Sequence record: LC494302.1
DNA: 64,000 bases
Strand: one strand, 5' to 3'
Positions 1,846 to 51,373 of the stretch are shown here, piece by piece (the first letter of the stretch is position 1; the number at the start of each line of letters is the position of its first letter). Both the position numbers and the translations under genes were made by a program. The notes under the pieces were generated by a model. That model was not told the DNA's origin. It saw only the letters and a program-made list of their open reading frames with translations, and ran no database searches.

Positions 1846-2361
1846 ATGCCAATTCCTTATGTTAAAATTATTAATAATATTCTCGATTCATGGGAAGATG
1901 TTATTACTGGTAAAAAGAAACCATCACCAGTACATGCTTTATCTGGGAAACTTCAATTCAGAATGTCAAACCAAACTGAAACATTTAATAATCATGATAT
2001 TTGCATTACATTAAAAACACCTGTTAGTATTGTAATTAAAAAAAATAAAGATGATGAATTGACATTATCTATTGGTCGTGATAAAATCATTTTAAGTAAT
2101 TTGTCTGAAGAAGAATTCTTTCAAAGAAGTACTATTATCGATATGAAAGATTTCACATATGAATCATTGGTTGAACTCAATACACGTTTTAACGATATTC
2201 AGGAACGATTGCGACCAATTCTTCGTATCGAAGAAGAAGCCTGGATTGAAAGTATTAGGAAGATGCAAGAAATGTTGAAAGAAAATATTAACAATCTGGG
2301 TAAAGCTACAATGGAATTTGGTAAAACTTTTAAACTGAACTTTTCAAAGGATCGTAAATGA
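1846..2361 (+). CDS. hypothetical protein, EExFFQxST-motif family
   Basis: ATG 1846 after AGGTG; motif SEEEFFQRSTIIDM. Confidence 0.7.
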   Translation: MPIPYVKIINNILDSWEDVITGKKKPSPVHALSGKLQFRMSNQTETFNNHDICITLKTPVSIVIKKNKDDELTLSIGRDKIILSNLSEEEFFQRSTIIDMKDFTYESLVELNTRFNDIQERLRPILRIEEEAWIESIRKMQEMLKENINNLGKATMEFGKTFKLNFSKDRK

Positions 2362-2813
2362 AAATTGATAATTTGATTCATGTTTTAGGATCTTTACATA
2401 AAATATTATCACATCTACATGAGATAAAGAAACTGGGATTTAACATCTCAAATTCAATTGAAACTACATTTAAATATCAATCAATTACTGGTGATGGTTA
2501 TTACATAATCGAATATACTTATGAAACCGATCCAGACTTCTATCCTCTTACGTTGAGAATTTATCCAACAAATCCGAGAGGAATTCACGACATATCATCA
2601 ATTTCACTTGATCCAGATGGTGAAACGAGTATTGAATACAATAATGATTCAAAACCAGAATTTTACATTGATGATATTAAAATGATGTTCAACGATGAAT
2701 ATGTTTTCCAACAAAGTACTGTGCATGATGTTGGAAGTACTAATGGACAATTTTGGAATACATGTTATTATCATATGATTGAAATTTGTAAATTATTAAA
2801 AGGCGATGATTAA
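2358..2813 (+). CDS. hypothetical protein, EExFFQxST-motif family
   Basis: ATGA-coupled ORF; motif NDEYVFQQSTVHDV. Confidence 0.7.
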   Translation: MKIDNLIHVLGSLHKILSHLHEIKKLGFNISNSIETTFKYQSITGDGYYIIEYTYETDPDFYPLTLRIYPTNPRGIHDISSISLDPDGETSIEYNNDSKPEFYIDDIKMMFNDEYVFQQSTVHDVGSTNGQFWNTCYYHMIEICKLLKGDD

Positions 2814-3192
2814 TGAAATACAGCATTGAAGTACATTACACTACAGGGGACACTGAAACTGAAGATTCAGTTACCAATACATTGGATGTTCAATGGGAAT
2901 CAAAGGATGAGGCAGTTGTAGCATTACAGTCTTTGAAAGAGCATTGGGTATTCTTTAAGAAACTCGATGATGCATATAGTAACGAACGTGCGACAATAAT
3001 CGATGAAGCCAAACATAAAGAATGGTTTGATCCAATGTCATGTGAATTCTCTTTCTTTGTAAAAATTGGAGATGAAAAAATTCCAGTACGTACACCGTGG
3101 AACGGCTACTTTGAAACTCTTCATAATGCACGAGTTGTCGCTGTTGATAATCCTGAACAAATCGATTTCGATTCATTGGACTGGAAAAAACT

Positions 3193-3636
3193 ATGACAGT
3201 ACTGCACCAATTGAAGAAGGTTAAGCATCCAGTTGTATATGAGGACTGGAAACGTCAGAAGCTGATGGGTGATTTTTATTTCCCAAAATCTAAAGTACTA
3301 GCAACGTCAAAAGCTATATACTTGAAATATAAGGATGAAGATTGTTTGTGTATTCAAATGGGATTCCATCCTAAAGTTGGTTTGTTTACAACAAATCAAA
3401 CATTTTATAAATTTAGAATTCAAAAAGATACATTTAGTATTCATATCGAAAAGCATGATGTACAAGATACAATTTATCGTGTGGAAAGTGAGCCTTTGAA
3501 TCTTGTTGAGATTCCGTACAATAATTTAGAAGAAATGTACTTTCAGCAGTTGACAATACAAGAAGACTTTGGTATGATAGGACTTCAAGAGTTAGAGATG
3601 ATTAAACAAATTCGTGATATCTACTTTAAGGAGTAA
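3193..3636 (+). CDS. hypothetical protein, EExFFQxST-motif family
   Basis: motif LEEMYFQQLTIQED. Confidence 0.7.
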   Translation: MTVLHQLKKVKHPVVYEDWKRQKLMGDFYFPKSKVLATSKAIYLKYKDEDCLCIQMGFHPKVGLFTTNQTFYKFRIQKDTFSIHIEKHDVQDTIYRVESEPLNLVEIPYNNLEEMYFQQLTIQEDFGMIGLQELEMIKQIRDIYFKE

Positions 3637-3638
3637 CT

Positions 3639-4740: not shown

Positions 4741-4920
4741 GTTTATGTTTGAGGTGTTTGTTGCATTCATCTTATGTGCTGTGTCTATTACTATTGCTTT
4801 AATCCCAGTAATCGTTTACCAAGTTAATGGTGGGACAGATCCAACAATTGATATTTTACTTCGTTGTTTCGGGTTTTTTATATGGTTGGCGATGTTTATG
4901 TACTACATGCATCTTGAGGA

Positions 4921-8004: not shown

Positions 8005-9737
8005 AAGGAAATAAAATGACTGAATCAGAACTACACGAAATGATAGATTTCATTTATGAAATGGTACAAGATAAAAATAACATCAATACAATTGCATCAG
8101 GCCCAAGACAAATTGGTAACCAAATAACATATTCTTTGTCCTTATGGTTACACCCGTGCATTAAGGTTGATTGTTTGTATTTCCGTCCTGATATTGATGC
8201 TTATTATTTTGTCAATCATGATGCATTAATGAAACCACATAATCGTCCAGTTGATGATACCTTTGTGACACACCCATTTTACCTGGCTGATTCCGAAGAA
8301 GATGAGTTTCAAAAGAACACAACGTTAAGCCCAGGTGAAATTTGCATCCCTTACGTACTTAAAGATAAAATGAATCACATCACAGAAGTTATGAAAACAT
8401 GCTGGTAGATGCAATGAAACTCTGATATAATACAAATAATGATAATAAGAGGATATATGAAATTTATTGATTTTGATATTTCTAAGGCCAAAGAATTATT
8501 TGTAAGAAATGAAGTTTATGATATCATGTTACATAACGGCACTGTACAAGAAGATGTTGTGTTGTTTTCGTTTGATGGTGAAAATCTCGAAACTATATAT
8601 AAATTCAGCAACTTAGATGGTGACTTTTGGGAAACCAGTGCTGTTAAAATGTATAGAATTAAAAAGGAGCATTAACATGCCAATTCGTGGTGTACCAGAA
8701 CCATTAATGGAAGTTATTAAGCATGTTCGCATTGGAGATCGAGAAGTTAATCTTCGCCGTAATAACATTTATTACTTTAAAACTTCAGAAATGAGTTCTG
8801 TACAGATTGTCATTGGTACATCTATTAAGATTACTCGTGTACTTGATGGTAGTACTGATTTCGTTGAATATAATGTACTTACTAACAAAGTAATACACAC
8901 ATATAAATGGAGTGGGTATAAAACTATTAAGTATGAGTTTGATGTTGCTAGAACTGAAGAAGAACGATTTATGTTAAGTACTATCAATCCAGCAAACTAC
9001 CCTGACCTTGATACATTTTTGCTAATTTTAAAACTGTATAATGAAGCAAATGGGAAAGCGAAGGAGTATGATAGAATTATGTATGAACGCAAAAAAGAAC
9101 GTGCTCAGAAAAGTTATGATCTTTATGATAACCCATATGTAAAATATAATAAGGGGAGAAAATGAATAACGAAGTTCAAATTATCATAACTCCACCTATA
9201 CAAAGTCTTGATGTATCTATTAGTGATTTTTTAGAAAAATATTATGAATGGTTTAATAATGATAATACCATTTATAATCATTCATTACCAGATGGTTTCG
9301 TGGAGCTTATCGAATTAAATTCAAAATCACTATACTTCTGTGTTGAATACAATGATTATATGACAGATGAAGATTATCGCTTTCGTTGTACATTGTATCC
9401 GAATTATTTTTCAATAGGTTATAAAGATTACCAGTACTGTACCACTAACTATAGTGTTGAGGAAGAATTTCAGTACAATTTACTTTATCCTGATTTAGAT
9501 TATACGATTGCAGTACTGTTGACTAAAATCATGGATTTTTATAAAGATAAATATAATGCAGCCTAAGACATTTGATGAGTGGTTTAATCTACACTATAAT
9601 ATAAATGCAGCAGATATATACTATTTTAAGCTTGAATTGTATATATCATTGCGTAACCCAATTGAGTACTATAACAACATTATCAATTGTGATGATTTTG
9701 GTACATATTTTAGTATAGCCGTTATGGATATTAAGAG

Positions 9738-10177: not shown

Positions 10178-10298
<121 letters not shown>

Positions 10299-10514
10299 TG
10301 AAAGTCATTATCAATCCAGCAGGAAACTTTTTTGGTGAGGTTTTCGGTGCAGACTGTGTTGTGCAAAATTTTCCACGAATTGAAATTGACGGAATTGATG
10401 TTCAACAATATGGAAACCTGTACTATGTAGTTGATAAGACTGGTTCTATTGTTCATGACAGTGCTTTCTTTACAAAAGAAGAGATGCAGCACTTAATTGT
10501 ACTGGATACATAAA

Positions 10515-10697
10515 ATGACACACGAAGAATGGATGTCCAAACAGCATAAAGAACATGACTGCTTTGGGAATGGCATTCGTCAGGTACATTATGATATATT
10601 AAGAGATGAAAATCTTTTCAGGTCATATGTTTTGGATACCAGAAAACCCTGGTTTATATGCGAACTGGCATTTAGAAAGTCAAATAATCAAAACTAA
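10515..10697 (+). CDS. MTHEEW-family small protein 3
   Basis: MTHEEWMSKQHKEHDCFGNG...WFICELAFRK. Confidence 0.7.
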   Translation: MTHEEWMSKQHKEHDCFGNGIRQVHYDILRDENLFRSYVLDTRKPWFICELAFRKSNNQN

Positions 10698-11275
10698 ACA
10701 AGGAATACAAAAAATGGAAACAACTTTATTTGAAGTTATTCAATCATTAAAACCTGAAGATGAGGTTCAAGTACTACTACATGGTTATCGTGTAAAAGGT
10801 ACTGTGGTTTTAGTCAATGATACAACATTGGTTATTACAGAAACAAACCCATATGATAGTAATCAACTTGCCAATATCCATATCGATATCACTGGAATTA
10901 TTGGTGTCGGTGTATCTAAAACACTTGCATAAATCATTAATTCATTATATAATGATTATCACTGGTTCTAGATGAGGATAATATTATGCATTTTGAAAAA
11001 TTCAACGTAAATCGTAACACACGCATTGAAGTTCTTTATGAAACTCAAGACACCATTAGTATTCGTACAAGTAGTGGGGATGTATATCATGACTGTACGA
11101 TTGGCTGGGAACAGGGAAGAACGCGTAGTGCAGTATTTGATAATTATCGCTTTTATCAAGGAGACACTACGATTTGGCCTGAATACGTAGAAGATATTGC
11201 GTTTGAAGATGAACATAAAGATGAATTTATCAAATTTAATCCTCAAACTGAATCATAAATAATGGGACATCACAT

Positions 11276-11391
<116 letters not shown>

Positions 11392-11395
11392 AAAT

Positions 11396-11497
<102 letters not shown>

Positions 11498-11502
11498 AAA
11501 CC

Positions 11503-11663
11503 ATGACGCATGAAGAATGGATGAATGACATTAATTTTAGATATGCAGGTTTCGGTAACTGGAGAAAGTATCATTGGGAAATCATGTCAGACCCAGCAGA
11601 ATACGATAAACTTATAAACCATGAAGCGTATCCGTGGTTCTTTATTGAAATAATGGTACGAAC

Positions 11664-11667
<4 letters not shown>
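11503..11667 (+). CDS. MTHEEW-family small protein 4 (54 aa)
   Basis: MTHEEWMNDINFRYAGFGNWRKYHWEIMSDPAEYDKLINHEAYPWFFIEIMVRT, read by hand. Confidence 0.65.
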
Positions 11668-11829
<162 letters not shown>

Positions 11830-11837
11830 AAAAAAAG

Positions 11838-12251
<414 letters not shown>

Positions 12252-12308
12252 CTAAATAATTCAGTACTGAGGATATTAATATGTTTAAAGATGAACGTCC
12301 AGATTTGT

Positions 12309-12346
<38 letters not shown>

Positions 12347-12351
12347 GAATT

Positions 12352-12692
12352 CCACAATCAGACGTATATGGTGTAAGTTACGTCGATGCAATCCAGAACA
12401 AGATCTCTGGTACTCTAGGAAGTGGTGAATGTTAACCTAGACGGGTTTGATAATTGGACGATAGGCAATTATTACTTGACTAGCAGGTTGAAACTAGAGG
12501 TGACAGTCCTTCACCAAACTGGAAAACCGGATGGACTTTTATTTAAAAGGGTAAGGCGTGGAAATATGTTTACAGAAGTTGCTTTTAGTAGCCTGTACGC
12601 CCCACGTCAAGGTAGCCGAAAGGCAAGTTAAAACGGATGGTTATAAAGCTGAATTAACAGCGGCGTTTAAAAGCGTCACCATCCATTTTTTT
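12352..12692 (+). ncRNA. putative ~330 nt structured non-coding RNA
   Basis: Own promoter, GC-richer than flanks, at least 8 hairpins, closes with GGATGG/CCATCC stem and T-run. Confidence 0.6.
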
Positions 12693-13029
12693 AATTAAAG
12701 TTGGTGATATGAGTGTTAAAGACATTTCAAAGTATGAAGAGTTTCTTAAATCATTTTTGAATTCAAAATTAACATCTAAAGCTTCTAAAAATTGGAGTGA
12801 GGATAACCCAGAAATCCGTGTTTTTAATGAGAACGATGAATCGTTTATTATTAATGATAACGAAATTGTTTTTGAATCATTAGAAGAAAATAAAGAAATA
12901 AAAAAACTAAAATATCCTACGTTACGAGATATAGTAAATAGTTTAAGTACTGAATACATTACTTTCAAGCTATGTGCTGATGAAGCAGATGAATTCCAGA
13001 AACGAACAGTATATGAAAATGTGTTTCCG

Positions 13030-13064
<35 letters not shown>

Positions 13065-13088
13065 GAAGGTTTTTTCCGAAAATAGTAC

Positions 13089-13473
<385 letters not shown>

Positions 13474-13491
13474 TTCACATGATATAGGGTG

Positions 13492-13556
<65 letters not shown>

Positions 13557-13571
13557 TATTGATGATTACCG

Positions 13572-13607
<36 letters not shown>

Positions 13608-13608
13608 T

Positions 13609-13676
<68 letters not shown>

Positions 13677-13744
13677 CATTTCAGGTGATGAATCTGAAGA
13701 AGATGGTTTTATTACTGAAACTATGTACTTAACTATTGAAAATC

Positions 13745-13824
<80 letters not shown>

Positions 13825-13949
13825 CTTCGCCTTATGATGACTATGCGATTGGTAATTGCGAAACTGCTCATTCATATCAAGCGGGTGACACTAATGTTGA
13901 AGAATCTGGCGAAGATTTTTCGGATTCATTTGATGAAGATGGAAAACTC

Positions 13950-14304
<355 letters not shown>

Positions 14305-14307
14305 ATA

Positions 14308-14394
<87 letters not shown>

Positions 14395-14449
14395 GACTGC
14401 CAAACAGCTTGAAGTACTTTGTAGTGCTGCACCTATGCCGACACTTGGC

Positions 14450-14550
<101 letters not shown>

Positions 14551-14562
14551 TATCTTACTTCT

Positions 14563-14652
<90 letters not shown>

Positions 14653-14658: not shown

Positions 14659-15084
14659 ATGAAATACAACATTGTTAAAATGGTGAACTATGTATTAAAA
14701 AACAACGCATGGTCACTGCATGATGTACAATTAGAAGATATTGGTGAAGTTAGAGTATTTTGCTATGATCCAGATTTGAATCAAACCACAGATTTGAGTA
14801 AATGTTTTAATATTTTTCTTGGTTATGAATTCAATAATCATTTTTATTCATTTGATGTGTATTTTGAAAAAGTTATATTCAGAAGTTATGAATGTGATAA
14901 TGAAGATTATGATTATGATGATGAATCAATTGAATTGAATGTTAACGATATTGATACTGAAGAAAAATTCTTCCAGTACTGCCTCCTTAACGACATATTA
15001 GGATTAACATTTGAGGACATTAAAGCTATACTTAAAGTTCAAAAGTTGATTCCAGAAGAGGTACTAAATCCATTAAATGACTAG
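14659..15084 (+). CDS. hypothetical protein, EExFFQxST-motif family
   Basis: motif DTEEKFFQYCLLNDILGLTFEDI. Confidence 0.7.
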   Translation: MKYNIVKMVNYVLKNNAWSLHDVQLEDIGEVRVFCYDPDLNQTTDLSKCFNIFLGYEFNNHFYSFDVYFEKVIFRSYECDNEDYDYDDESIELNVNDIDTEEKFFQYCLLNDILGLTFEDIKAILKVQKLIPEEVLNPLND

Positions 15085-15442
15085 TCTAATAGTACGTATA
15101 ATGCAAGATGTTTGTAATAACCTTTATACAGGCAATTTTGACGATCCGAACATAAAAATATTATGTTATGATGGTTTTACAATGGTACATCCATCCTATT
15201 CAAATAATATCTACGTAGCATATACAGGTGAAAATCTATTATATCAATTTGATATATATAGTACAATGACAAAGATAATTTTGGATGCCTCTAAACCAGC
15301 AATCTTTATTGCTTCTCATGATTACCATTACACTGAAGAATCACTATTTCAGTACTCAATGATTAATGACATTGGTGGGTTGACATTGGATGAGGTTAAT
15401 GCTATACTAGCTGTCTCACGTTTGGTTAAAACCCACAATTAG
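15077..15442 (+). CDS. hypothetical protein, EExFFQxST-motif family
   Basis: motif YTEESLFQYSMINDIGGLTLDEV. Confidence 0.7.
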   Translation: MTSLIVRIMQDVCNNLYTGNFDDPNIKILCYDGFTMVHPSYSNNIYVAYTGENLLYQFDIYSTMTKIILDASKPAIFIASHDYHYTEESLFQYSMINDIGGLTLDEVNAILAVSRLVKTHN

Positions 15443-16143: not shown

Positions 16144-16582
16144 CTTATATAGGTGAATGCAATGAGTTATTTGTTTACTTTAATTGATAAGTATGTTGAC
16201 ATTGTATACCGTCAAGTTTGTAGTGATACGTTTGAAACAAAAAACCCAATTAGAGATGGCATTTTTGATGTTGTCGTTGGATCATTTTTGAATGGATACA
16301 CAGAGACATTATACAACAGTAATAATATTTTTATTTCAGTTCAATCCAGACATACATCAGACTATGCTGTTAGCATTGATATTTGGGAAAATAATATAGA
16401 AATAGATATAACGGAACATACTAACATTCATGTTGATGATACATTTAATCAATTAACTGAAGAAATGTACTTGCAGTTGAATTTTGTACATGATCTTACA
16501 AATATCAGTTATGATACATTAAGGAAAATATGTTTTCTTAGTGGGGTGATCCGTAGTAATATGAGTAAGGATAGGAAGTGAA

Positions 16583-16999
16583 ATGTTAAAAATTCCACCT
16601 AAGTCGTTAACACATCTTATTGAATGTGGTGTAATATTTTCCGAAGGTGATACCTCATCATACACATTGGTCGATGAACCTTATAATTTTTCATACCAAT
16701 CTTATAAAAATAATTCTAAAATTTCTTGTAGATATGCTGAAAACATATTAATAGATGTTTCGTTACATAATGTTCCGAAATTTTACATTGATATCTTTGG
16801 TGATTCTTTGACAATTCGAACATATGATTATTTTATTAATAAAGACCTCTTGAGTCTTCCAATTGAACATGATACTATAGATTCAGAGATGTTCTTTCAA
16901 CTATCAACAGTTTACGATTTACAGGGTTTAACTGTTGAGCAGTTGAATGGAATATTTGAGATTTCACGAAACATACGAAGCAGGAATAAAAATGTCTAA
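16583..16999 (+). CDS. hypothetical protein, EExFFQxST-motif family
   Basis: motif IDSEMFFQLSTVYDLQGLTVEQL. Confidence 0.7.
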   Translation: MLKIPPKSLTHLIECGVIFSEGDTSSYTLVDEPYNFSYQSYKNNSKISCRYAENILIDVSLHNVPKFYIDIFGDSLTIRTYDYFINKDLLSLPIEHDTIDSEMFFQLSTVYDLQGLTVEQLNGIFEISRNIRSRNKNV

Positions 17000-19117
17000 T
17001 ATTTTAAATGAAAAAACAGTTGATGTTGTTATTGGTGTTCTTAACACCGCAACTTCATTTCAGAAGAAACACAGTGTTGTATACTTTGGTGAAGATTGTT
17101 GGCTGAACTATACTAATAATTCGTTTATAATTCGTGTAGAGGCTGATGATATTGGATTAACCGTTCAGGTAGGATGTGCCAAAACTGACAAACAAATCAC
17201 TGTCATTGTTGATAAACTTACGTCTTCTTTTTATGATAGTATAGATGATTGTGAACACTATAGTTCAACATTTTATGATACAGAAGAAGAACATTTTATG
17301 GAAAGTACTGTTCAAGAGTTAGCTATTCCATATAAGCTAATGAAAGCCGTGAGTGATTTAATTTTAAAATATAAAAAAAATAGGAGTTACTAATGCAATT
17401 TAATGGTAAAGTTTCCAAAGTAGGTTTGGTTTTTGAAAACTGTGAATTTGTTGATATTGATGTAAAGAATGTTTTATGGATGCATATTGCTGATGAGAAG
17501 ACTCTTTGTAGCCGTTTTTCAAACGGACTGACAATTAGTACTGTTATCGGTGAGTTCGGTATTGCATTACGCAGCAATACACCATCGGATTTCATGGACA
17601 ACTCTACACTGTTAGACCGTTTAAAAATGCGTGACGTTACACACGTTTATCTATATGATACTAACGGTGTTGAACAGCGTTATGTAGTTGAATGGGCTAA
17701 TTATAACCTTAGTGATCAATATTCAGTAAACCAGCGTGTTCAAATCACCCCTGGTGGTAATATTGTGTTTGTTAGTTCAACTGGTAAATTAATCAGTGTA
17801 GATGATAAAAACATTGACCTATTCACAGCATATAACTAATACGAGCTTCCATGAAAACAATCAAAATTCATTTCAAAGACACTTGGACAGAAGTAAGTAC
17901 TGGTAATATTCAGGATATTTTATATAGTACTGAAACTATTCATGTTTATGATGAAGAGACTGCTTCCGAGCAGTTAAAAGTTTTGCATCGTAGTGTTGGT
18001 GTGCACACTGAATATGGCATTAAACATACTCGTGAATTACTTAATACTAATCACATTGAAACCCGTAAAGCAAACTTATCAAAAGAAGAAATGTTCGATT
18101 TCATCCTGAACCATAAAGTTCATATTGAGCCTGATGGGTCTATATGGGAGAACACTGCTGGACAAAAAGTGCTGAAAAAATATCATGTTTCAATTGATAA
18201 TGTAAAAATGTCAGGGTATGATTTGGAAGATGCAATTAATGAATATGTATCTAGGCAGAGGGCAAATTGATGAGCTTGATAACATTTACAATTATTTGTT
18301 GCATTACTATTGTACTTTGTCGCCTGATTCATGTATACTCATATCATAAAGCGTTGCGAATCGAACAAGAGATTTACAACGAAAACCGAGAACCAGAACC
18401 AGTCAAGAAGCCACCATCACCTTATGGGTTGAAACGTGAGATGCATTCTCAAAGTAAAAAGTGGGGTTATGCAATTACTAAAAATGGCTACATCTATACT
18501 GCAAGTAATGGTTATTTTCAAATTCACCACGAATTAGAAGTGGCAGTTCAAATTTTGTGGGAGATGGAGGACATTGGTGGTTATGAGCGTACTAAGTTTG
18601 AATTCATATCAAATGATCCAGGAACTTCACGAGAAACATGATATAATTGTTGATGTGGAGAAGAAGGAAGTCGTTATGAAAAAGCAAGCATATAGAATTT
18701 TAGAAGACTTCCATCTAAAAGCATTTATAATGAAGTTCTGTACAGATGAACATCTTACCGGACGAGTAATACGTAAGGAGTTGTAAATGAACTTAAGTTC
18801 AACAATTCAGTACTTGAGCAGTAACTTCGAGAAAATTATTTCTCGCGGTGGGATGATTGTACACCCAGAAACAGAGGAAATGTACATCATTGGATTTGAT
18901 AAAAATTCTTATGATCAAGTACTTGTAATTTCCAAGTTAGAAAGTTATAATGAAGTTGTTCAGTTTTGCTGTACCGAATTTGGTATCTATATTAAAGACG
19001 CTGAAACTAATACAATTTCGCATTATTTTTACCACACACTGATGGGTACTAAAGACTTCGGCTTGAAGTTCGATGATTTAGTACAATGTCACTATATGTT
19101 TAAAACCTTCCCAGCTA

Positions 19118-19930
19118 GTGGGCATTAAGGAGTATATCAATATGAGCAACATTTTCTTCAAAACTATTTCTTTCAAAAAAGCATCTTACTCCTACGCCTA
19201 CGTTGATGGTAAAGTGCTTAATATTGTACTGGATGGTGTTGACGTACCAGTTGAATTTAAAACACATGAAGAAGCAGTTGAAGGTGCTAAAGAATTGAAT
19301 TCAATTCTTAATGGTGAAGTAAGTCAAAAACAACATGTAAAATCTGATTTAGATGTACTTTTGGAAAAAATCAAAACTGGTGAAGTATTAGAAATTTTAG
19401 ACAACTGTAATGAAAAACTTCGTAATGTAGTTAATAATGTTCGTGACCAGATTCAAGAAAAAGCACTAGAGCAAGCATTCAAACATGTATCCAAGAATGC
19501 TGAATCTCGTATTGACGGTATGGTTAAAAATCTTGATGATGTACTATCTCATCTCTTTACTAAAGAATACGAACAAGAAGTTGAAGAAGAACCAGTAAAA
19601 GAAACTAAAAAAGAAAAACGTAGCTTTGGCTCAGGTGATGATGTGTTTGGTTTTACGAATGTCAGAACAAGTGCAGATGAACCAAAAGAAATTAGTGAGA
19701 TGCTCATTGGTGACATGACAACTAAGCAGCTTCGTAATGAAATTGACAAGTTTGTAACTAGTTGTATCAAATCAGAACGTGCACAAAGTATGTTTAAAAG
19801 CATTAGTGAGAACTTTGGTCCAGAAGCAACTGAGCAGGCACTAACTGCATTTAAAGAATTGATTTATAATGTAGCCATTAGCAATCCAGATAAAACACTT
19901 GAAGAAGTTCTACGTGACAATTTCAAATAA
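19118..19930 (+). CDS. hypothetical protein
   Basis: 270 aa, acidic/helical. Confidence 0.65.
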   Translation: MGIKEYINMSNIFFKTISFKKASYSYAYVDGKVLNIVLDGVDVPVEFKTHEEAVEGAKELNSILNGEVSQKQHVKSDLDVLLEKIKTGEVLEILDNCNEKLRNVVNNVRDQIQEKALEQAFKHVSKNAESRIDGMVKNLDDVLSHLFTKEYEQEVEEEPVKETKKEKRSFGSGDDVFGFTNVRTSADEPKEISEMLIGDMTTKQLRNEIDKFVTSCIKSERAQSMFKSISENFGPEATEQALTAFKELIYNVAISNPDKTLEEVLRDNFK

Positions 19931-19972: not shown

Positions 19973-21127
19973 TTATGCGTTGTAACCAACTATTACGACT
20001 GAGCAGTCAAGCGGTTCTACTACTTTAAGAATTACATTATCATCTTCATCCACTTGTATTTCACTATGAACTACATGATTGTCTGAAGAATATAATTGAA
20101 CTTGTGGTAGTGCTTTACCATGTTCAGTTACTGGAACTGAGATAGAGTACATAGAGTCTTCACCGAGAACCCACTCACTTAAAGTATATTCTTTATGGAA
20201 AGGAGTAGTATGCAGTGTTTTTCCGATTATACTCAAAGAAACAGGTAAATTATCAGTTTGATACACAGTAATATTACCTTCTGCGTCTACAGAAAGATCT
20301 ACACCAACTTGATATAAGTCACCACTGTATGCTTGAAGTGCTAAGTACTGTCCACGATCATGAACATCAAATGGAACAACCGCAGAAAATACACCTTCCG
20401 AAACAGGTTCAAATTGGGATAGAAGAACTGATGTAACAAAATCAATATCCTCACCACTTTCAAGAACATCAAATTCCACCACTTTAGTGTTATAATATGG
20501 AGAAGTGAGCGTAGCAGTACCTTTCCCTGATTGTGTGATAACATCAACTGGAATTGTAAATGCATCATTAACAAATTGGGTAGTAAAGTATTCTGTCCCG
20601 TCTGGTAATACGATTGTTATTACCATACCGTTAGTATCAATTTCTGAACCAGTGTTGAATAATTTACCACTAATTGAGTCATTACCAACAAATACTGGTG
20701 AAATGAGAATATTATCTATATCACGATCTATAATACCACATTCAGGTGTATACATATGATACAAGGTTTGTGAACTACCTAAAATTGTTTTATGTAGCAT
20801 AAATTTATATACAAATCCAGTATCAGTTTCTTGTGGCTCTTCAGAATATCCACGAACAAAGAAACAATTTTTATTAATTTCACTTAATAGTTGGTCATTA
20901 GTTTTATTGTAATTTAATATATAACCTTTATTATCTTTAGTTGTTATTTGTACTTTACGATATATTATATTAGTTCTTGGATCAACTAAATCATATAATC
21001 TATGGCTTCTTTGGCGATAGATTCTAATATTTTTTAGTCTAGTTCCATCGTTGAGGATTGCACCATCAACAACATAACCACATTCACCAAACTTATAGCG
21101 TCCAGCCGCAGCAATTGACCTTGACAT
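19973..21127 (-). CDS. putative virion structural protein
   Basis: Only long - strand gene in the first 51 kb; GGAGG RBS, TAAATA upstream, two tandem beta-rich C-terminal repeats (SAVVPFDVHDRG..LQAY / SISVPVTEHGKALPQVQLY). Confidence 0.55.
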   Translation of the reverse strand: MSRSIAAAGRYKFGECGYVVDGAILNDGTRLKNIRIYRQRSHRLYDLVDPRTNIIYRKVQITTKDNKGYILNYNKTNDQLLSEINKNCFFVRGYSEEPQETDTGFVYKFMLHKTILGSSQTLYHMYTPECGIIDRDIDNILISPVFVGNDSISGKLFNTGSEIDTNGMVITIVLPDGTEYFTTQFVNDAFTIPVDVITQSGKGTATLTSPYYNTKVVEFDVLESGEDIDFVTSVLLSQFEPVSEGVFSAVVPFDVHDRGQYLALQAYSGDLYQVGVDLSVDAEGNITVYQTDNLPVSLSIIGKTLHTTPFHKEYTLSEWVLGEDSMYSISVPVTEHGKALPQVQLYSSDNHVVHSEIQVDEDDNVILKVVEPLDCSVVIVGYNA

Positions 21128-25404: not shown

Positions 25405-25902
25405 ATGACAACTGTTTATATTGATAAACGATTAAATTTATTGATTACCGATTCTAGAGTTACGTCAACTATACCACGAAACTTATTTGGTTTTTTCCCA
25501 CTAAGACCAAAATATCAATATGGAGTTGTTAATCAAAAAACTTTATATGTACATGACCGTTTATTCAGTGCTAGTGGGGTAGTAAGTGAAATTGATAAAG
25601 TACTGGATTGGTTAATTAATAAAGTACCAGTTATACCTGACAGAAAGTTAAGTTGCCATTGTGTGCTTCTTTCTAAAGATTATGTTATTCATATGATTTT
25701 AACTAAAGGAAAGTTTATTAAAAAACTTGAATATCTACATGAAGACTACACTTTCTTTATGGGAAGTGGTGGAGAATACATGCTAGATGCTGCTATTCAT
25801 GAAGAACATACAACTTTATATGATAAAGTGTTTAGTACTTTCATGGATGTGCACAACCATGATTGCTTCACAGATGATAATATTAATGTATATCGATTTT
25901 GA
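25405..25902 (+). CDS. Ntn-hydrolase / HslV-proteasome-beta-like protein
   Basis: N-terminal MTT, TDSRVT, SASG and MGSGG motifs at the spacing typical of HslV-like subunits. Confidence 0.5.
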   Translation: MTTVYIDKRLNLLITDSRVTSTIPRNLFGFFPLRPKYQYGVVNQKTLYVHDRLFSASGVVSEIDKVLDWLINKVPVIPDRKLSCHCVLLSKDYVIHMILTKGKFIKKLEYLHEDYTFFMGSGGEYMLDAAIHEEHTTLYDKVFSTFMDVHNHDCFTDDNINVYRF

Positions 25903-25923: not shown

Positions 25924-26889
25924 GTGAAAAAGCTTGATTTAAATACAATTGCCGAAGAAGTTCTGGATGAATGTTTTGCTAATGAAGAAGTCAACACACT
26001 AGAAGCCTTAGATTTCGTTGAAGATAAAGATGATAATGAAGGTAAAGTACAAAGCAGTTTCAAATATAATATTACACTTAAGCGACCACCAAATGTTTCC
26101 AATGAAGATCTAATTCGTGATATTCAAGCTGGTATCAATGTAAAGAAAAACACTGAACTGTTAGTTCGTTACAATTATGGACTGATTATTGATGTAGCAA
26201 GTAAATGTACTTGTTATATCCCATTTGAAGATAAGATTTCATATGGTGTTGAGGGGTTCATGAGAGCACTAAAAACCTTTGATCTTAATAAGAATGTTAA
26301 GTTCATTACCTATGCTTCTTCTAGTATTTACATGACAGTCTATAACGAAAGTTCTGACGCTAACTATATGGTACACTTCCCACGTTATATGAGTGTTCAT
26401 AAGATCAAAGTAAAAAGATTCTGCCAGGAATATATGCGTAAACATGGTGTTCGCCCAACACCTGAAATAATCTCAGAGGGTACTGGGATTGAGATTCAGC
26501 ATGTTAATAATTGTTTATTATTTCAAAGCGAATACACTTCACTGGATGCACCATTAGACGGTGTTACAGATGGTACATTAGGTGACATTATTCATTCACC
26601 TGCTTCTGATTTTAACCTCAATGTTGATAGTATCCGTGCACCTTTACGTTATGCTATCAATGAACTGACTAACGAATTGAGTACTAAAGAACGTGAGATT
26701 ATCCAGCGTGTTCATGGTCTAGGTGAATATGAACCTGAAACGCTTCGTGAGATTGCTGATAATGGTTTTGTTGATGATAATGGAAAATATGTTAAATCCC
26801 GTTCATCAATACACCGAAAGTACAGTGAAGCTATGCAAAAGCTTAAGAAGTTAGTACTTGCAAAAGGGTACGAATACGAAGATTTCTAA
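25924..26889 (+). CDS. RNA polymerase sigma70-family factor
   Basis: Region 2 GFMRALKTFDLNKNVKFITYA, region 3 TSLDAPL, region 4 LSTKEREIIQRVHGL...ETLREIA. Confidence 0.88.
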   Translation: MKKLDLNTIAEEVLDECFANEEVNTLEALDFVEDKDDNEGKVQSSFKYNITLKRPPNVSNEDLIRDIQAGINVKKNTELLVRYNYGLIIDVASKCTCYIPFEDKISYGVEGFMRALKTFDLNKNVKFITYASSSIYMTVYNESSDANYMVHFPRYMSVHKIKVKRFCQEYMRKHGVRPTPEIISEGTGIEIQHVNNCLLFQSEYTSLDAPLDGVTDGTLGDIIHSPASDFNLNVDSIRAPLRYAINELTNELSTKEREIIQRVHGLGEYEPETLREIADNGFVDDNGKYVKSRSSIHRKYSEAMQKLKKLVLAKGYEYEDF

Positions 26890-31508: not shown

Positions 31509-32027
31509 ATGGATATTAATGAGTTGTTGAAATTAGTGTTTAATCGTGAACGCCGCGATACAAGACCAATTGAATATCAAGATGTGATACGCATTGAAAC
31601 TGATTTCTGTTATGGTAAAACAACTCATGACCTTTTGAATCTCTCTGGAAAACGCTATGCTGATGTTTGTTTTTCAGAGAGAAGTGATGGTTCAGAAATA
31701 ACGAGTACTGATATTGTTTGTTACGCACGCAGTGCTGATAAATCTTATGAAATAGAACTTATATATTCCCCTAGTTCTAAAACAAATCATCACCGCCATA
31801 TTTTATATGATGTTTATACACCACCTGGTATTGCTGAATATTTTGTTATTGATTATAGTACTGAAGAAAATGTGTTTCAACAAAGTTTGATTCATAACTT
31901 TGAGGTGAATGATCCATTAGTACCAAAGTTGTTCAAACTACTTGACACCATAGATGTTGATTTTGAATTTGTTATGTGCATTAGAACTTCTTTATTCAAT
32001 GAATTCATGGAACTTTTTAATATATGA
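31509..32027 (+). CDS. hypothetical protein, EExFFQxST-motif family
   Basis: motif STEENVFQQSLIHNF. Confidence 0.7.
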   Translation: MDINELLKLVFNRERRDTRPIEYQDVIRIETDFCYGKTTHDLLNLSGKRYADVCFSERSDGSEITSTDIVCYARSADKSYEIELIYSPSSKTNHHRHILYDVYTPPGIAEYFVIDYSTEENVFQQSLIHNFEVNDPLVPKLFKLLDTIDVDFEFVMCIRTSLFNEFMELFNI

Positions 32028-35355: not shown

Positions 35356-35390
35356 AAAGGTTGACTTCGGTCAGCCTTTTTTGTTATAAT
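35356..35390 (+). repeat. terminator-promoter repeat copy 1
   Basis: AAAGGTTGAC-TTCG-GTCAGCCTTTTTT; TTGACT in the stem, TATAAT 18 nt later. Confidence 0.85.
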
Positions 35391-37040: not shown

Positions 37041-37637
37041 GTGAAATTATTAATTGAGGAAATTATGAATCGTAAAGGTCGTTTTAAAGTATCAAAAAAG
37101 AACAAAAGTTCTAGGTTTAAACCTATTGTTTTAACAGTTAAATCTAACAAAGATTTAACTGCACTTAGTAAAAAGATAATTTCATCTAAGATTGAAGTAT
37201 CATACGTAAATTCATTAAAATATATGAATGTCAAACCACTGGACCAACTCATTTCACTTATATTTGAACGTAATGATTTTGAGATATCAGTAGATGATTA
37301 TAGAGCCTATAATGCTGGTTTCATTAATGTTACTTGTAATAAAAAACTAACTGAGTTGGAAAATTTGTCATGTATAATAAATCTAGATAAAGGTGTTGTG
37401 AAGTACCATTTTGTACATTTCACTAATATCAATAATGGAATGGGTGTACAATCCAGACCTATAGTGCCTACGTGTGATGTTACTAAATTAGCAAAGCTCA
37501 ATGATGAAGAATATTTTCAAGAAAGCATTGTAACTGAGCATTTAGATGATATAATAGCTACTTACAAAGAATGCATATGGGTGTTGAATGCTATAAAACC
37601 TAAATTGTGTTTAATGAATATTGTTCGTGATTTATGA
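37041..37637 (+). CDS. hypothetical protein, EExFFQxST-motif family
   Basis: motif LNDEEYFQESIVTEH. Confidence 0.65.
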   Translation: MKLLIEEIMNRKGRFKVSKKNKSSRFKPIVLTVKSNKDLTALSKKIISSKIEVSYVNSLKYMNVKPLDQLISLIFERNDFEISVDDYRAYNAGFINVTCNKKLTELENLSCIINLDKGVVKYHFVHFTNINNGMGVQSRPIVPTCDVTKLAKLNDEEYFQESIVTEHLDDIIATYKECIWVLNAIKPKLCLMNIVRDL

Positions 37638-45703: not shown

Positions 45704-45739
45704 AAAGGGTTGACTACGGTCAGCCCTTTTTGCTATAAT
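45704..45739 (+). repeat. terminator-promoter repeat copy 6 (TACG loop)
   Basis: AAAGGGTTGAC-TACG-GTCAGCCCTTTTT; TTGACT-18-TATAAT. Confidence 0.85.
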
Positions 45740-45767: not shown

Positions 45768-46283
45768 ATGACACGCATTAACTTAGTACACGTTAAAGAA
45801 CTTGCTGACCAACATCTGATGGCTGAATATCGTGAACTCCCACGTGTATTTGGTGCTGTACAAAAACACGTTCAAGCACGTAAGCGTGTACGTGATTTCA
45901 AAATTAACAGTACTTATCTGTTAGGTTCAGGTCATGTGACATTCTTTTACGACAAGTTGCTGTACTTACAGAAGCGTCATATCGATATTGTTAACGAATG
46001 TTTGCGTCGTGGTATGAAGATTCAAAACACTGAAGTAAACGACATTAGCGGCTTCCCTGCTGAGTTTTGTAATGACTACGTACCAACGGAGTCAGAGATT
46101 AAAATGTCTCGTGATCGTTTGATTGAGAAGCTCCAGATGAAGCCTACGTGGTATAAGTTTACTGATGTTGAATGTCCACAGTACGTTAAAGATATGCAGA
46201 ACGTAAGTAGTAAGAACGAATCTAGTACTGATATGTTCGACGAAATTGAAGAACAAATCAAAGATGAAATGAATAATTATTAA
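45768..46283 (+). CDS. denV: pyrimidine-dimer DNA glycosylase / endonuclease V
   Basis: MTRINLV...[17 protein letters not shown]...[20 protein letters not shown] matches T4 DenV signatures. Confidence 0.93.
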
Positions 46284-46985: not shown

Positions 46986-47021
46986 AAAGGGTTGACTTCG
47001 GTCAGCCCTTTTTGCTATAAT
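46986..47021 (+). repeat. terminator-promoter repeat copy 7
   Basis: AAAGGGTTGAC-TTCG-GTCAGCCCTTTTT; TTGACT-18-TATAAT. Confidence 0.85.
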
Positions 47022-47049: not shown

Positions 47050-47820
47050 ATGACCAGAGAAGCACGCAGCATTCAAATTCAGAAAAACTTCAACTCCATG
47101 ATGGTTGCTCTTGAGTGTTTGCTCGATGATAGCAGTACTGTAAAAAGTATGGTTGTCAGTGGTGCTCCTGGTGTTGGTAAGACTTACACCTTGTCCCAAC
47201 GTCTCCAGAAGGCTCATGACGCAGCAGAATGGAACGTAGCTACTATCAGTGGTAAGATGACTACACTGGCTCTGTACGAAGTTCTGTACAAGAATCGTCA
47301 CAGCACCAACGTGTTAGTACTGGATGATATGGACAGCATCTTTGATTCTGAAGACGGTATGAACCTGCTCAAAGCTGTTTTGGATAGTGGTAAGCGTACT
47401 GTATCTTATATGACTAGCTCTAAGTACTTGAGCACTAACGGCATTCCTAATAGCTTTGATTTTAATGGTCGCATCGTATTCATTACTAACAAAGATTTAG
47501 CGTTAGATGCTAAAGCTAAAACTAAAATGTCTGCTCATTATGCTGCTCTTATGTCTCGTTCTGTGTACGTGGATTTACAGATTCAGACTAAAAGTGATAT
47601 CATGATTCATATTGAAAATGTAATGACTAAGACTAATATCCTTGCATCTAAAGGTGTTAACAGTAACGGTAGTAAAGCAATTCTGAACTGGATGTTAAAA
47701 CATGAAGATAATCTTCGTGCACCATCCCTGCGTATGCCTTTGTTGATTTCAGCAGTATATAACAACAATCCGTATGATTGGGAAGAACAATGTGAAAACT
47801 TGTTCCTTGAGAAAATCTAA
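47050..47820 (+). CDS. AAA+-type P-loop ATPase
   Basis: Walker A GAPGVGKT, Walker B VLVLDDMD, sensor-like VFITN, ALMSR. Confidence 0.85.
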   Translation: MTREARSIQIQKNFNSMMVALECLLDDSSTVKSMVVSGAPGVGKTYTLSQRLQKAHDAAEWNVATISGKMTTLALYEVLYKNRHSTNVLVLDDMDSIFDSEDGMNLLKAVLDSGKRTVSYMTSSKYLSTNGIPNSFDFNGRIVFITNKDLALDAKAKTKMSAHYAALMSRSVYVDLQIQTKSDIMIHIENVMTKTNILASKGVNSNGSKAILNWMLKHEDNLRAPSLRMPLLISAVYNNNPYDWEEQCENLFLEKI

Positions 47821-47829
47821 TTACATATG

Positions 47830-47858: not shown

Positions 47859-47887
47859 AACTTAATATTCACCACCGGAGATACGAT

Positions 47888-50668
47888 ATGCTTGAGTTTT
47901 TTAATTCAGATACAATGCTTGGTATCACGCTAATTTACATGTTTGTATTCTTGTTTTATCATTCAATTGTAATTAGTCTTTGGTATTTTAAAAGGAAAGT
48001 TGTTTTTAAATTGTATTCGTATGATAATGTACTCTTAGTAGTATATAGCATTATACAAGGTGGGTTTATTTTATTTGGTGTGATGACATATGTGATTTAC
48101 ATGTTACAAATTGATAATACACCACACATTACACAATATGTTGTGTTTTCAGGACTAATCGTCTGGTTATTGGTGTGTACTCTGTATTTTATTATTAAAG
48201 CTCGTGATAACTTTAAATGGGGATTCTAATGTTAGAATTTTTTAAATCAGATACAATGATTAGTATTACTTTGATTTATCTGTTTGGTTTTTTCTTTTAT
48301 CATGCACTAGTTGTAGTACTATGGTATTTTAAAAAGAAAATTGTTTTTAAACTGTATCCAGTGAGGAATTCATCACTAGTTCTTTACACACTTGTTCAAG
48401 GTTTGTTTGCAATTGTTGGTCTTATGGCACACTTAATTTATTGTGCCAATCCTCACTTGAACTCAATCTCACAATATATTGTATTCTTTGGGTTGTTCAT
48501 TTGGTTAGTTGTATACTTAATCCATCTCATTATTCATGGTAGAGATAAAATTCGCGGAGACTTCTAATGTTTGAAGCTTATCTTGAGTTTTTAAGGAGTA
48601 GTCCAGTTGCACATTCACTTGCAGGGATTATTCTAACAACTTATGTATCATTTTGGGTAGTTATGTTTCTAGGATGGTATTTTAAACGACAATTCTATAA
48701 ACGTAATGGTGAAGATTTTATGAATTCTGTCATTAATCAATCGTTGTTTGCATCAACATTGATTGCATGTATTGTAGCAACACTCACAGGAAAGGTACTA
48801 CCAGCTTTTTCCGCAGTTTACGGCACACTTGGGATGATATGTTTAACTTTTATATTGACCATTAAAATTTGTTGTGTTATGATTGAACTTCGAAATAAGA
48901 TACCGGAGGAATGATGGAGTACTTTATTGATTTACTGCCGTGGTATATGAAAGTTAGTACCATGTACTATATTATTAGTGCTGGATTCTACTTTCTGATG
49001 TGGTTCTTTAAACGACCAATTTCAGTATTCATCGCTGATAACATGTTGCAATTAAAATTACACGCATGGTTTGGTATGGCGATGATTATGCCTATTATTC
49101 ACTACTCAATGATTAGTAGAGGTTTCCGTTCTAATGGTGAACCAATTGTATTAGTATTCTATTGGGGTTCAACTATTGCATATGTAAGTTTGTTGTTGTT
49201 CCCAGTCGTTCATAAGTTACGTGCTAAAGTTCCTGATGCGAGGTACTAATGGATATAGTAACATTGATTTACACGTTGTATTCATTCTATTTCATTATGT
49301 GTTGGGTTGGATTTTTATTTGTACTCAAGATGTTTGATTATGTTGAAAAACAGATAAAAGAATTTTGTATTCCTTTTATCGGTTCAACCATTATTAGTGT
49401 TTCTTGTGTGTATTTTTTGGTTTTTGATCCACCAGATAACACTGCAATGATTGACTTGATGTTACTACCAACAACTGTTACTTTTTTATGTAGTCTGATG
49501 CCGCCGATTAGCCGTGGACTAACAGAATTTAGACGCAATCAAAAGCGTAAACGAGGGATGTAATGGAAATTGCTCTTATTATCTTAACTGCTATGCTGTT
49601 TATTAGTACTGTGGTTATAATTGGTAAATTCTTTTGTGTATCATTTTTAGAAACGGTATACGATGAAATTGCTGATGATTATGAATTACAAGCCGGATTT
49701 TTCATTACGTATTGGCTTAGTTTATTTTGTCTAGTCATTGCTTGGATTTTACATATCTTTAAATGGGGTATGGTAGACGGTGATCCTATTATGGCAATTA
49801 TTGTTCTAGTGTTTGGTATCCTTGGTGGTGCAGTGCATAATCTAATGGTTATCTGGCAAACTGTTCAATATGTTTTGGTTCCCTATTTCGAAAAGATGCA
49901 CAGTACAATTAAAAAACGTAAACGAGGTTAGTATGAACGGGATAGAATTATCTTTCGTTGGTCAATTACTAGTAATGGCGTATACATTTATCTTCTCACT
50001 GAATGCATTCGTGTGCATTGGGAAGTACTTCCATAAGCGACCATTATCAAATATATATGATGTAATCCAAAAGAGATATAGTCCAGCATATACTGTGTTG
50101 GGTACAGTATTCAATTTTGGTTTTATTGTATTAATAATTGGACTGTTCACATCCTCTTTGAATACAATAACCTTCGGTCTTATGATATGTTCATTGGTAT
50201 TAGCCGTAATTATATGTTGTTTAGTACTGCACCTTGTGGTACTATTGTATATAAAGATCTCTGAAATCCACCAACGTTTGGGTATGAGGAAATAATATGA
50301 GTTACCGTGAGATATTTTCCATTATTTCAATTATTATGTTCAGTACTGGAACACTGGTATGGTTATTATACTTCTTCTGTATTAATCCAGTGTATAATAT
50401 GTTATGTAATATTAAATCAAGTGCCGGATATATCACTTTTATGGTCTTTATGGGATATTATTGTCTAAGCATTTTAGGTGTTGTTTTGGTTGTTATATTT
50501 GATGTGGGACCAAATAGTGATGGTATGGAAATACATGAATTAATAACCATGTTTGGATGTATGATACCAACAGCACTACTGTTTGTAGCTACTGGTAGTG
50601 GATTGATAAAATTATATAATTATTTAAAATCCATTCATAATTCCATTCATAATAAGCGTATGTCATAA
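47888..50668 (+). CDS. eight tandem ~105-125 aa 3-TM membrane paralogs (starts 47888, 48229, 48567, 48911, 49249, 49563, 49933, 50297)
   Basis: Coupled ORFs, three hydrophobic segments each, W[YF]FK[RK] or K[FY]F after TM1 in most, basic C-tails; first two begin MLEFF[NK]SDTM. Confidence 0.75.
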
Positions 50669-50674
50669 TAAAAA

Positions 50675-50698
50675 ATCCAGTACTATTAAGTACTGGAT
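50675..50698. terminator. hairpin built from two AGTACT sites
   Basis: ATCCAGTACT-ATTA-AGTACTGGAT with an upstream A-run. Confidence 0.5.
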
Positions 50699-50710
50699 GT
50701 ATAAGGAGTT

Positions 50711-51373
50711 ATGATGAAATCAAAATTAGGTTTGTTTTATAAAAACTATTTTGTTAAACAACGTAAATTTATAAAAAAATATTTCTCTGGCGAGAAGTCT
50801 AGTCCTATAATCTTTAAAAGACCAAGTTATAATACTTACTTAGCTGGTGCTAAACAGTCTAAGAAATTTATTACTCTTTTACATAAAAACAAAATTAAAG
50901 CTTCTTATGTTGAAACGAGAAGAAACTCATCAATAACTCCTGGTGATTTTATTGAGTACGGATGTTTCAATATTAAGTACAATGATAATACATACTTTAT
51001 GGATATTGATTGTAATACATCCAATCTTTTTAACATTGTAGTAAATCCATTAAAACAATATAATGTTTATGGTGATTCTATTATCAAATTAATCAAAAAC
51101 AAAGATAGCTTTGATTTTGAAATAAATGTTTTAGATGATAATTTTGACGAAGTACCAGTAAACCCTGAAATCTGTGATATTTTAAACAGTTTAAAAGGTA
51201 GTACCTACACTATATCATCTGATTTAATGTTTCAGTACTCATTAATCCATAAAGATATTGAAAAGTATATTGAATGCTCCAGAATTTTGAATTTTCTCTA
51301 TGATGAATTTAAAAAGAGTTCTAAAATAACTGCATACACTTTGTACAATATTCCTAAAATGGTGAATCTTTAA
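50711..51373 (+). CDS. hypothetical protein, divergent EExFFQxST-motif family
   Basis: motif SSDLMFQYSLIHKDI. Confidence 0.6.
   Translation: MMKSKLGLFYKNYFVKQRKFIKKYFSGEKSSPIIFKRPSYNTYLAGAKQSKKFITLLHKNKIKASYVETRRNSSITPGDFIEYGCFNIKYNDNTYFMDIDCNTSNLFNIVVNPLKQYNVYGDSIIKLIKNKDSFDFEINVLDDNFDEVPVNPEICDILNSLKGSTYTISSDLMFQYSLIHKDIEKYIECSRILNFLYDEFKKSSKITAYTLYNIPKMVNL

Follow-up and report, generated by a model that had tools for sequence, protein, structure and literature searches.

An expanded, apparently clade-restricted family of small acidic proteins sharing an E-E-x-x-F-Q-x-S-T motif in the Escherichia jumbo phage SP27

The DNA analysed here (the window; 64,000 nucleotides) corresponds to positions 62001-126000 of Escherichia phage SP27 (LC494302.1, Asteriusvirus PBECO4, 347,152 bp), a Rak2-like jumbo myovirus of E. 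coli with 597 annotated features. A 4.8-kb piece matched SP27 at 100% identity, and over its first 50 kb the window is identical to SP27 62001-112000. It carries 16 genes whose products share a short motif close to E-E-x-x-F-Q-x-S-T and are all annotated as 'hypothetical protein'. The genes sit in a long block of small genes on the + strand, with transfer RNA (tRNA) genes interspersed. The analysis identifies them as members of a previously undescribed protein family that appears restricted to one clade of jumbo phages, hugely expanded there and without an assigned function.

Sixteen motif genes in one block of the SP27 genome

A preliminary description of the window had listed 16 motif strings, and all of them were found exactly, each in the open reading frame (ORF) named for it (Table 1). 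In five genes (1846, 8677, 16162, 16992 and 37065) the ORF starts used there lie upstream of the GenBank starts, leaving the motif unaffected. As had been claimed, the motif is located in the C-terminal half of the protein (at 53-77% of protein length in the 16 members), ahead of an amphipathic helix. In 11 of the 16, its Phe and the C-terminus are 30-37 residues apart, and the segment C-terminal to it is predicted to be helical with i/i+3/i+4 hydrophobic periodicity. The strict pattern [ED][EDA]..F[QM].[SN] matched 9 of the 16 members, compared to none of the 194 other ORFs in the window and 0.16 per shuffled proteome. A loose pattern matched 15 members, again none of the 194 other ORFs, and 2.1 per shuffle. 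The preliminary description had named failure of hidden Markov models (HMMs) built from half of the set as a possible refutation. In this test, repeated four times, 3-5 of the 8 held-out members outscored every one of 3450 shuffled decoys each time, with only one unrelated real ORF ever intruding. The motif thus occurs far beyond chance, and its observation is confirmed. The list of 16 proved complete for the window, deeper profiles adding no member there. It nevertheless understated the family, which far exceeds 16 proteins.

Table 1. Family members in the window and example AGTACT sites. Lengths are in amino acids (aa); bit scores are those of the family HMM (A2) from the SP27-wide ORF scan.
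Feature	Coordinates (strand)	Length (aa)	Motif	Motif position	Bits	Remarks
Member	1846..2361 (+)	171	SEEEFFQRSTIIDM	2104-2145	49.6	length from annotated start; longer C-terminal tail
Member	2358..2813 (+)	151	NDEYVFQQSTVHDV	2691-2732	57.9	
Member	3193..3636 (+)	147	LEEMYFQQLTIQED	3526-3567	79.1	top score
Member	8016..8408 (+)	130	SEEDEFQKNTTLS	8292-8330	35.4	
Member	8677..9165 (+)	162	TEEERFMLSTINP	8953-8991	57.0	length from annotated start; basic C-terminal tail; M replaces Q
Member	9162..9566 (+)	134	SVEEEFQYNLLYPD	9453-9494	48.8	
Member	11898..12251 (+)	117	TEEEYFQMSTVQEP	12144-12185		best-confidence model
Member	12709..13098 (+)	129	EADEFQKRTVYEN	12982-13020	34.8	
Member	14659..15084 (+)	141	TEEKFFQYCLLNDI	14956-14997		blastp against 15077: E 1e-11 over 107 aa
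Member	15077..15442 (+)	121	TEESLFQYSMINDI	15332-15373		full-length alignment with 14659 and 16583
Member	16162..16581 (+)	139	TEEMYLQLNFVHDL	16456-16497	70.9	length from annotated start; L replaces F
Member	16583..16999 (+)	138	DSEMFFQLSTVYDL	16880-16921		first member modelled
Member	16992..17393 (+)	133	TEEEHFMESTVQEL	17280-17321	57.9	length from annotated start
Member	31509..32027 (+)	172	TEENVFQQSLIHNF	31860-31901	44.0	isolated copy
Member	37065..37637 (+)	190	NDEEYFQESIVTEH	37500-37541	59.2	basic N-terminal extension
Member	50711..51373 (+)	220	SSDLMFQYSLIHKD	51215-51256	33.9	most divergent; basic N-terminal extension
AGTACT, example sites	2128, 2715, 8977, 12168, 17304					

Six tRNA genes (Gly, Ser, Ser, Met, Asn, Thr) at 10200-14642 (+) alternate with family members. 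In phage Munch, tRNA genes are likewise interleaved with family arrays.

Family size, distribution and novelty

A profile of the 16 members, searched against 1.84 billion representative proteins, returned 44 matches at E<=1e-3, of which ~30 were new proteins of 114-207 aa (mostly 130-150 aa). Many of these matches span the whole profile, and they sharpen the consensus to TEEEyFQqSTv.Df.gLT.ED. Within SP27, 49 ORFs outscored all 2853 shuffled decoys, a conservative count, and an iterated profile raised the number of members to 72. They are arranged in two tandem blocks, at 58-79 kb (20 members, 13 of them window copies) and at 159.6-187 kb (42 members), with a few singletons. The family thus makes up roughly 8-12% of the genes (49-72 vs 597 annotated features in SP27), or about a tenth in Rak2-like jumbo phages. 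Its proteins are about 150 aa long and acidic (median isoelectric point 4.76), and show no predicted membrane character.

Relatives were detected by tblastn in jumbo phages of Salmonella (Munch, 7t3, SE_PL, PHA46), Klebsiella, Yersinia, Erwinia and Pectobacterium (CBB). A syntenic region of 40 kb in phage Munch contains 10-13 members, and two short metagenomic contigs carry 5 and 4. Besides Munch, arrays are present in the Rak2-like phages RaK2, CBB and GAP32 and in Yersinia and Erwinia phages. All matches in cultured phages belong to Rak2-like jumbo phages of Enterobacterales, and a word-indexed homology search returned almost exclusively close Asteriusvirus orthologues. A 42-bit DNA pattern of the motif, run against IMG/VR, found eight loci, all on contigs of 346-378 kb and including RaK2 and CBB. 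The same pattern gave 0 matches in 185,579 cellular genomes, a weak negative because it is too strict to find even the window's own copies (0 matches there).

Pfam profiles at E<=1 placed neither the 16 members nor a set of 46 family proteins in a known family, and there was no F-box, BTB or MAM33 match. SUKH_6 was matched by 1 of the 46 at E 0.021 only, which does not place the family with SUKH / SMI1-KNR4 proteins by profile. None of the 46 matched a PADLOC defence profile, NCBIfam gave a single spurious match (E 0.008) and no family, and the family HMM found nothing better than E about 1 among PDB sequences. In PHROGs, nearly every member falls into its own function-unknown family (e.g. phrog_17453, 38573, 21500, 23719), the 1846 protein included. 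Window members match their PHROGs at E 1e-57 to 1e-151, except 16583, which matches phrog_17453 at 1.2e-11 only. Weak cross-matches between these PHROGs fall on the motif. The family is thus split there into many unlinked, function-less groups, and the superfamily relationship shown here is absent. A role as virion protein was considered and rejected: the 'virion structural protein' annotations of PBECO4 fall on 19118-19930 and 19973-21127, neither of which is a family member.

Published accounts touch on paralogy in these phages in general terms. About 10% of RaK2 proteins are paralogous to other RaK2 proteins (PMC3622015), 22 paralogous ORFs are listed for CBB (PMC5259590), and a comparative review of jumbo phages treats other expansions and not this family (PMC7824862). 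The literature on 121Q, PBECO4, RaK2, CBB and Sharanji, together with the jumbo-phage review, contained general remarks on paralogues only, and a description of the family or its motif was not found in it. The family is new.

Constraint, fold and promoter context

In an alignment of 102 sequences, the Phe of the motif is conserved at 97%, the Gln at 89% (M otherwise), the Ser at 81% and the two Glu positions at 79% and 78%. Hydrophobic or aromatic residues occupy the position before the Phe, the Phe itself, the T/L and V/I positions, and +8. On the helical wheel, about two thirds is taken up by conserved or hydrophobic positions and only three positions are freely polar, and the Thr/Ser followed by E-E at the start fits an N-cap and an acidic first turn. 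By its column pattern, the motif looks like a keystone helix packing into the core. Across 89 orthologues of the 14659 protein, variability is lowest in the motif (0.22 bits, compared to 0.64 for the N part). Synonymous codons differ at each conserved residue in roughly genomic ratios (GAA/GAG, TTT/TTC, four Ser codons), and the constraint therefore acts on the protein.

The N-terminal parts had been described as dissimilar, which holds at the sequence level for most pairs. With HMMs of the N parts alone, just 6-14% of the held-out members scored above the 99th percentile of the decoys. In hhalign comparisons of N parts alone, using ortholog-based profiles, probabilities stayed below 2%, with the 14659/15077 pair as the sole exception; these two and 16583 form a group that aligns end to end over about 105 residues. 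Neither method links subfamilies, and sequence comparison cannot establish that the N parts are homologous. Their length varies narrowly, around a median of 97 aa.

AlphaFold models were obtained for two members with mutually unalignable N parts. The model of 11898 has a predicted local distance difference test (pLDDT) score of 89.0 and a predicted template modelling (pTM) score of 0.80, and consists of a helix (3-14), five strands (18-79), the motif helix (84-93) and a last helix (100-116). That of 16583 (pLDDT 72.4, pTM 0.61) has a helix at 7-14, strands at 18-94, the motif helix at 101-110 and a last helix at 118-137; its best-predicted block is the motif helix (about 93). In both models, then, a helix is followed by an antiparallel beta-meander, the motif helix and a C-terminal helix. 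Foldseek found no significant neighbour of either model in the PDB (best E 0.03-0.12, template modelling (TM) score <=0.38), with an Rhs immunity protein (E 0.12, TM 0.27) as the top fold match in one search. Against BFVD, the best dozen matches had probabilities of about 0.7-1.0, and only uncharacterised proteins of the phages GAP32, RaK2, slurp01, UB and of Yersinia phages were returned.

The preliminary description had proposed a modular family, in which a variable target-binding domain is joined to a constant docking module, by analogy to F-box or BTB adaptors. Its observational part stands, in that the members are real paralogues in which a single element is constant and the rest varies strongly. 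A separable docking module with an independent variable domain, as in F-box or BTB adaptors, is not supported: profile matches to F-box or BTB are lacking, sizes are narrow, the two models are compact and the hydrophobic arc of the motif helix is wide. A uniformly diverged fold with the motif in its core had been named as the outcome that would speak against modularity. The findings come close to this, as the two models present a single architecture and sequence patterns suggest that the motif is buried.

On the + strand of the window we counted 30 matches of at least 11/12 to the sigma-70 consensus TTGACA-N16-18-TATAAT (at 2059-47021), ten of them perfect (12/12). The - strand has a single match of at least 11/12 (expected 2.8 +/- 1.8). 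All matches in the window are confined to 1-47 kb, a range that also holds 15 of the 16 members, and a near-consensus promoter at 11839-11866 directly precedes the 11898 gene. SP27 as a whole has 105 matches on the + strand vs 12 on the - strand. Dense consensus host-type promoters are the usual mark of early regions in T4- and T5-type phages. Given the promoter density in the family block, early expression by host RNA polymerase is likely.

Two features of the promoters were observed in passing. Six of them (e.g. 11839, 12318, 13089, 29273, 33588, 43941) share the arrangement TTGAC(A/T)-N9-AGTACTG(n)TATAAT. Three promoter-like sites at 35361-35390, 45710-45739 and 46992-47021 have the near-identical sequence aaagggTTGACTtcggtcagccctttttgcTATAAT, in which a GC-rich hairpin and the T-run behind it overlap the -35 box and spacer, as if a terminator-promoter fusion had been repeated.

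The interpretation we favour, with a probability of roughly 0.55, is that one scaffold, with a hypervariable sheet and the motif helix as keystone, has expanded within a single clade, and that its members act early as binders of host proteins. The 16 genes are paralogues of one family of small (about 120-190 aa), mostly acidic and soluble proteins, which has undergone massive expansion in Rak2-like jumbo phages of about 350 kb and is apparently confined to them. Each member would form a single alpha+beta domain composed of an N-terminal helix, a meander of ~5-8 strands, the motif helix, a loop and the C-terminal amphipathic helix. The motif, [TS]-E-E-x-phi-F-Q-x-S-[TL]-[VIL]-x-D, would be the short helix itself, with T-E-E as N-cap and acidic first turn, and with F, [TL] and [VIL] as its hydrophobic face. 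This helix may be the conserved keystone of the fold, around which sheet and loops have diverged past sequence recognition. Encoded in same-strand arrays with near-consensus sigma-70 promoters, the members would probably be made early by host RNA polymerase. Together they may bind or inhibit a range of host proteins, as a diversified repertoire serving takeover or counter-defence, with the variable surfaces providing specificity and the constant helix providing fold stability. A binder or inhibitor repertoire is suggested because the proteins appear to be early, cytoplasmic, acidic and massively duplicated, with fast-diverging surfaces on a constant scaffold in one clade.

Several points weigh against this interpretation. 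The second family cluster has fewer consensus promoters. The shared fold comes from just two AlphaFold models, based on overlapping family alignments, and in one of them the N-terminal 40 residues are of low confidence. Burial of the motif in the core is deduced solely from helical periodicity and sequence patterns. Retention of the Gln at 89% and the Ser at 81% in a hypervariable family goes beyond the usual demands of packing and would also fit a functional contact. Finally, searches of Pfam, NCBIfam, PADLOC, PDB sequences and Foldseek yielded no target, phenotype or homologue of known function.

Competing explanations and known systems

The motif overlaps with a peculiarity of the DNA. AGTACT is the most over-represented hexamer of the SP27 genome, at roughly 10-fold. 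There are 192 copies in the window, compared to 20.2 +/- 4.2 in dinucleotide-preserving shuffles, and 912 in SP27, compared to about 100 expected from a first-order Markov model (z = 30 vs a third-order model). The flanks often extend the palindrome to CAGTACTG. The hexamer is found in each of the three reading frames. Ser and Thr are most often encoded by AGT and ACT in this DNA. The excess skews the usage of codon pairs and even of dipeptides: S-T, Q-Y and V-L are in excess and T-S and Y-Q are not, with Ser-Thr written as AGT-ACT in 52% of cases (15% expected) and Gln-Tyr as CAG-TAC in 35% (8% expected). An excess of about 10-fold was also found in Munch, RaK2, CBB and other 350-kb phage contigs, making it a clade-wide property. 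We found no report of an AGTACT excess in phages in the literature; a modification or binding site is one possibility. The preliminary description was right that Ser-Thr is encoded by AGT-ACT in several copies of the motif, yet this is genome-wide and not particular to the family.

Conservation of the motif at the DNA level, either as a by-product of genome-wide AGTACT selection or as an embedded regulatory site, might be suspected from these numbers. Of the 72 members, 34 have AGTAC at +4 or +9 relative to the F codon, where it lands on Q-Y or on S-T, and the Gln is encoded by CAG in 36 of 67 cases vs a background of 23%. This CAG excess arises because AGTAC falls on Q-Y. However, about half of the members have no AGTAC in the motif, conservation of E-E, F and Q is not explicable by AGTACT, and the motif Ser-Thr is encoded by AGT-ACT in 16 of 29 cases (55%), equal to the genome-wide 52%. 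With several synonymous codons in near-background ratios at every conserved residue, a DNA-level origin is effectively excluded. Hardly more credible is the idea that the motif is read as a linear signal for recognition or processing, e.g. as a degradation tag or a site for protease cleavage after F-Q. The potyviral NIa protease, e.g. of tobacco etch virus (TEV), recognises E-x-x-Y-x-Q/(S,G), a pattern that the motif resembles, and E-E-x-[YFL]-F-Q places E, aromatic and Q at P6, P3 and P1 spacing. Yet the P1' residue is variable (Q, Y, L, E, M) and not G or S, and the segment is modelled as the most confident helix in both proteins and not as an exposed linker. No 3C/NIa-like protease is found among the SP27 annotations, the genome not having been profile-scanned for one. 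We regard such a site as very improbable.

The adaptor model deserves more weight, although we consider it unlikely. In this model, the motif helix and C-terminal helix dock on one common partner, which might be the ClpP- and ClpA-like proteins of the phage (encoded outside the window), a phage sigma factor or some hub protein of the host, and the different targets are brought in by the variable beta part. The split into constant and variable parts is real, and the polar E, E, Q and S are conserved at 78-89%. Candidate partners exist: SP27 has genes annotated ClpP1 and ClpA, and the window encodes a sigma-70-family factor at 25924-26889 (+), which is 'hypothetical' in SP27 and matches Pfam regions 2, 3 and 4, with only region 3 reaching the cut-off. 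The syntenic Munch gene is annotated as RNA polymerase sigma factor. The partners named in the preliminary description fare less well. The 'Ntn-hydrolase-like' protein (25405-25902, +) has no Pfam match at E<=1e-3, and the 'AAA ATPase' (47050-47820, +) has marginal P-loop NTPase matches, of which only generic AAA (24 bits) reaches the Pfam cut-off. Besides lacking an F-box or BTB signature, the proteins are modelled as one compact domain and not two modules, and the wide hydrophobic arc and the capping-box-like start of the helix suit a structural role. A combined version, in which the sheet faces bind different host or defence proteins and the E-E/F-Q/S positions and C-terminal helices dock on one machine (a ClpP/ClpA-like protease or a sigma factor), is quite unlikely. 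If true, such a targeting repertoire would be a bacteriophage analogue of the substrate-adaptor families of eukaryotes and giant viruses, taking up about 10% of the genome. Similarly doubtful is self-association, with the conserved helix-loop-helix as interface for homo- or hetero-oligomers, e.g. mixed assemblies with variable outer faces. It would account for a hydrophobic and aromatic share of the short helix that exceeds the need of packing on one sheet, and the models bear a weak fold likeness to oligomeric proteins with a sheet and C-terminal helices (p32/p22, CapZ, levivirus coat proteins). These structural matches are insignificant, however (E>=0.03, TM<=0.38), and the monomer models are already confident and compact.

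Other genes in and near the window are of separate interest. A C5 cytosine DNA methyltransferase (461-1321, +; Pfam E 7.5e-38) is unnamed in SP27, and a pyrimidine-dimer DNA glycosylase (45768-46283, +; Pyr_excise, E 5.9e-15) is labelled just 'phage endonuclease'. At 51850-63606 (-), nine paralogous genes coding for about 250-430 aa stand in a row that is mosaic between phages; in related phages several carry the annotation RCC1-like or 'putative DNA condensation', and one, in phAPEC6, that of an Ig-domain or S-layer protein. Outside the window, at 154-159 kb of SP27, ~27 very small genes (about 65-85 aa) are arranged in tandem and overlap end to end, adjoining the second cluster of the FQ family on its upstream side. 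This array is probably another expanded family.

Rak2-like jumbo phages (121Q, PBECO4, RaK2, CBB and others) are widely isolated and have been proposed for therapy, with about 80% of their genes unannotated. Recognition of the family gathers dozens of unrelated 'hypothetical proteins' into a single unit open to testing and joins many separate PHROGs into one superfamily. The invariant helix offers a single mutational handle (FQ to AA) on all members. So large a repertoire, evolving quickly on a single scaffold, has the features expected of an arms-race arsenal, whether for taking over the host or for countering its defences.

How does the family compare with known systems? F-box and BTB adaptors likewise combine a short constant element with a variable remainder in many paralogues per genome. 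In contrast, the constant element of the SP27 family is a 10-residue helix plus the C-terminal helix, which the models place inside a single domain of ~120-150 aa. The proteins p32/gC1qR-Mam33, p22, CapZ and levivirus coat share with both models the succession of helix, antiparallel meander and two C-terminal helices, and p32 is acidic, like the SP27 family. At Foldseek E values of 0.03-0.5 and TM scores of 0.2-0.38 (p32/p22 chains against the PDB: E 0.13-0.48, TM 0.25-0.35), this is a resemblance of fold class and not membership.

The closest parallel is offered by the lineage-specific multigene families of viruses. Comparable expansions are found in poxviruses, African swine fever virus and giant viruses. 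The SP27 family has no profile or fold match to these, and its copy number of 49-72 is very high for a phage; a zinc-ribbon expansion in Bacillus phage G reaches roughly 35 copies (PMC7824862). Like the viral families, it comprises dozens of diverged paralogues in tandem same-strand arrays, apparently within one clade, non-structural and located in early-type regions, with a probable constant core and fast-evolving surfaces. In having many diverged paralogues in tandem, the SP27 family fits the definition of a viral lineage-specific multigene family.

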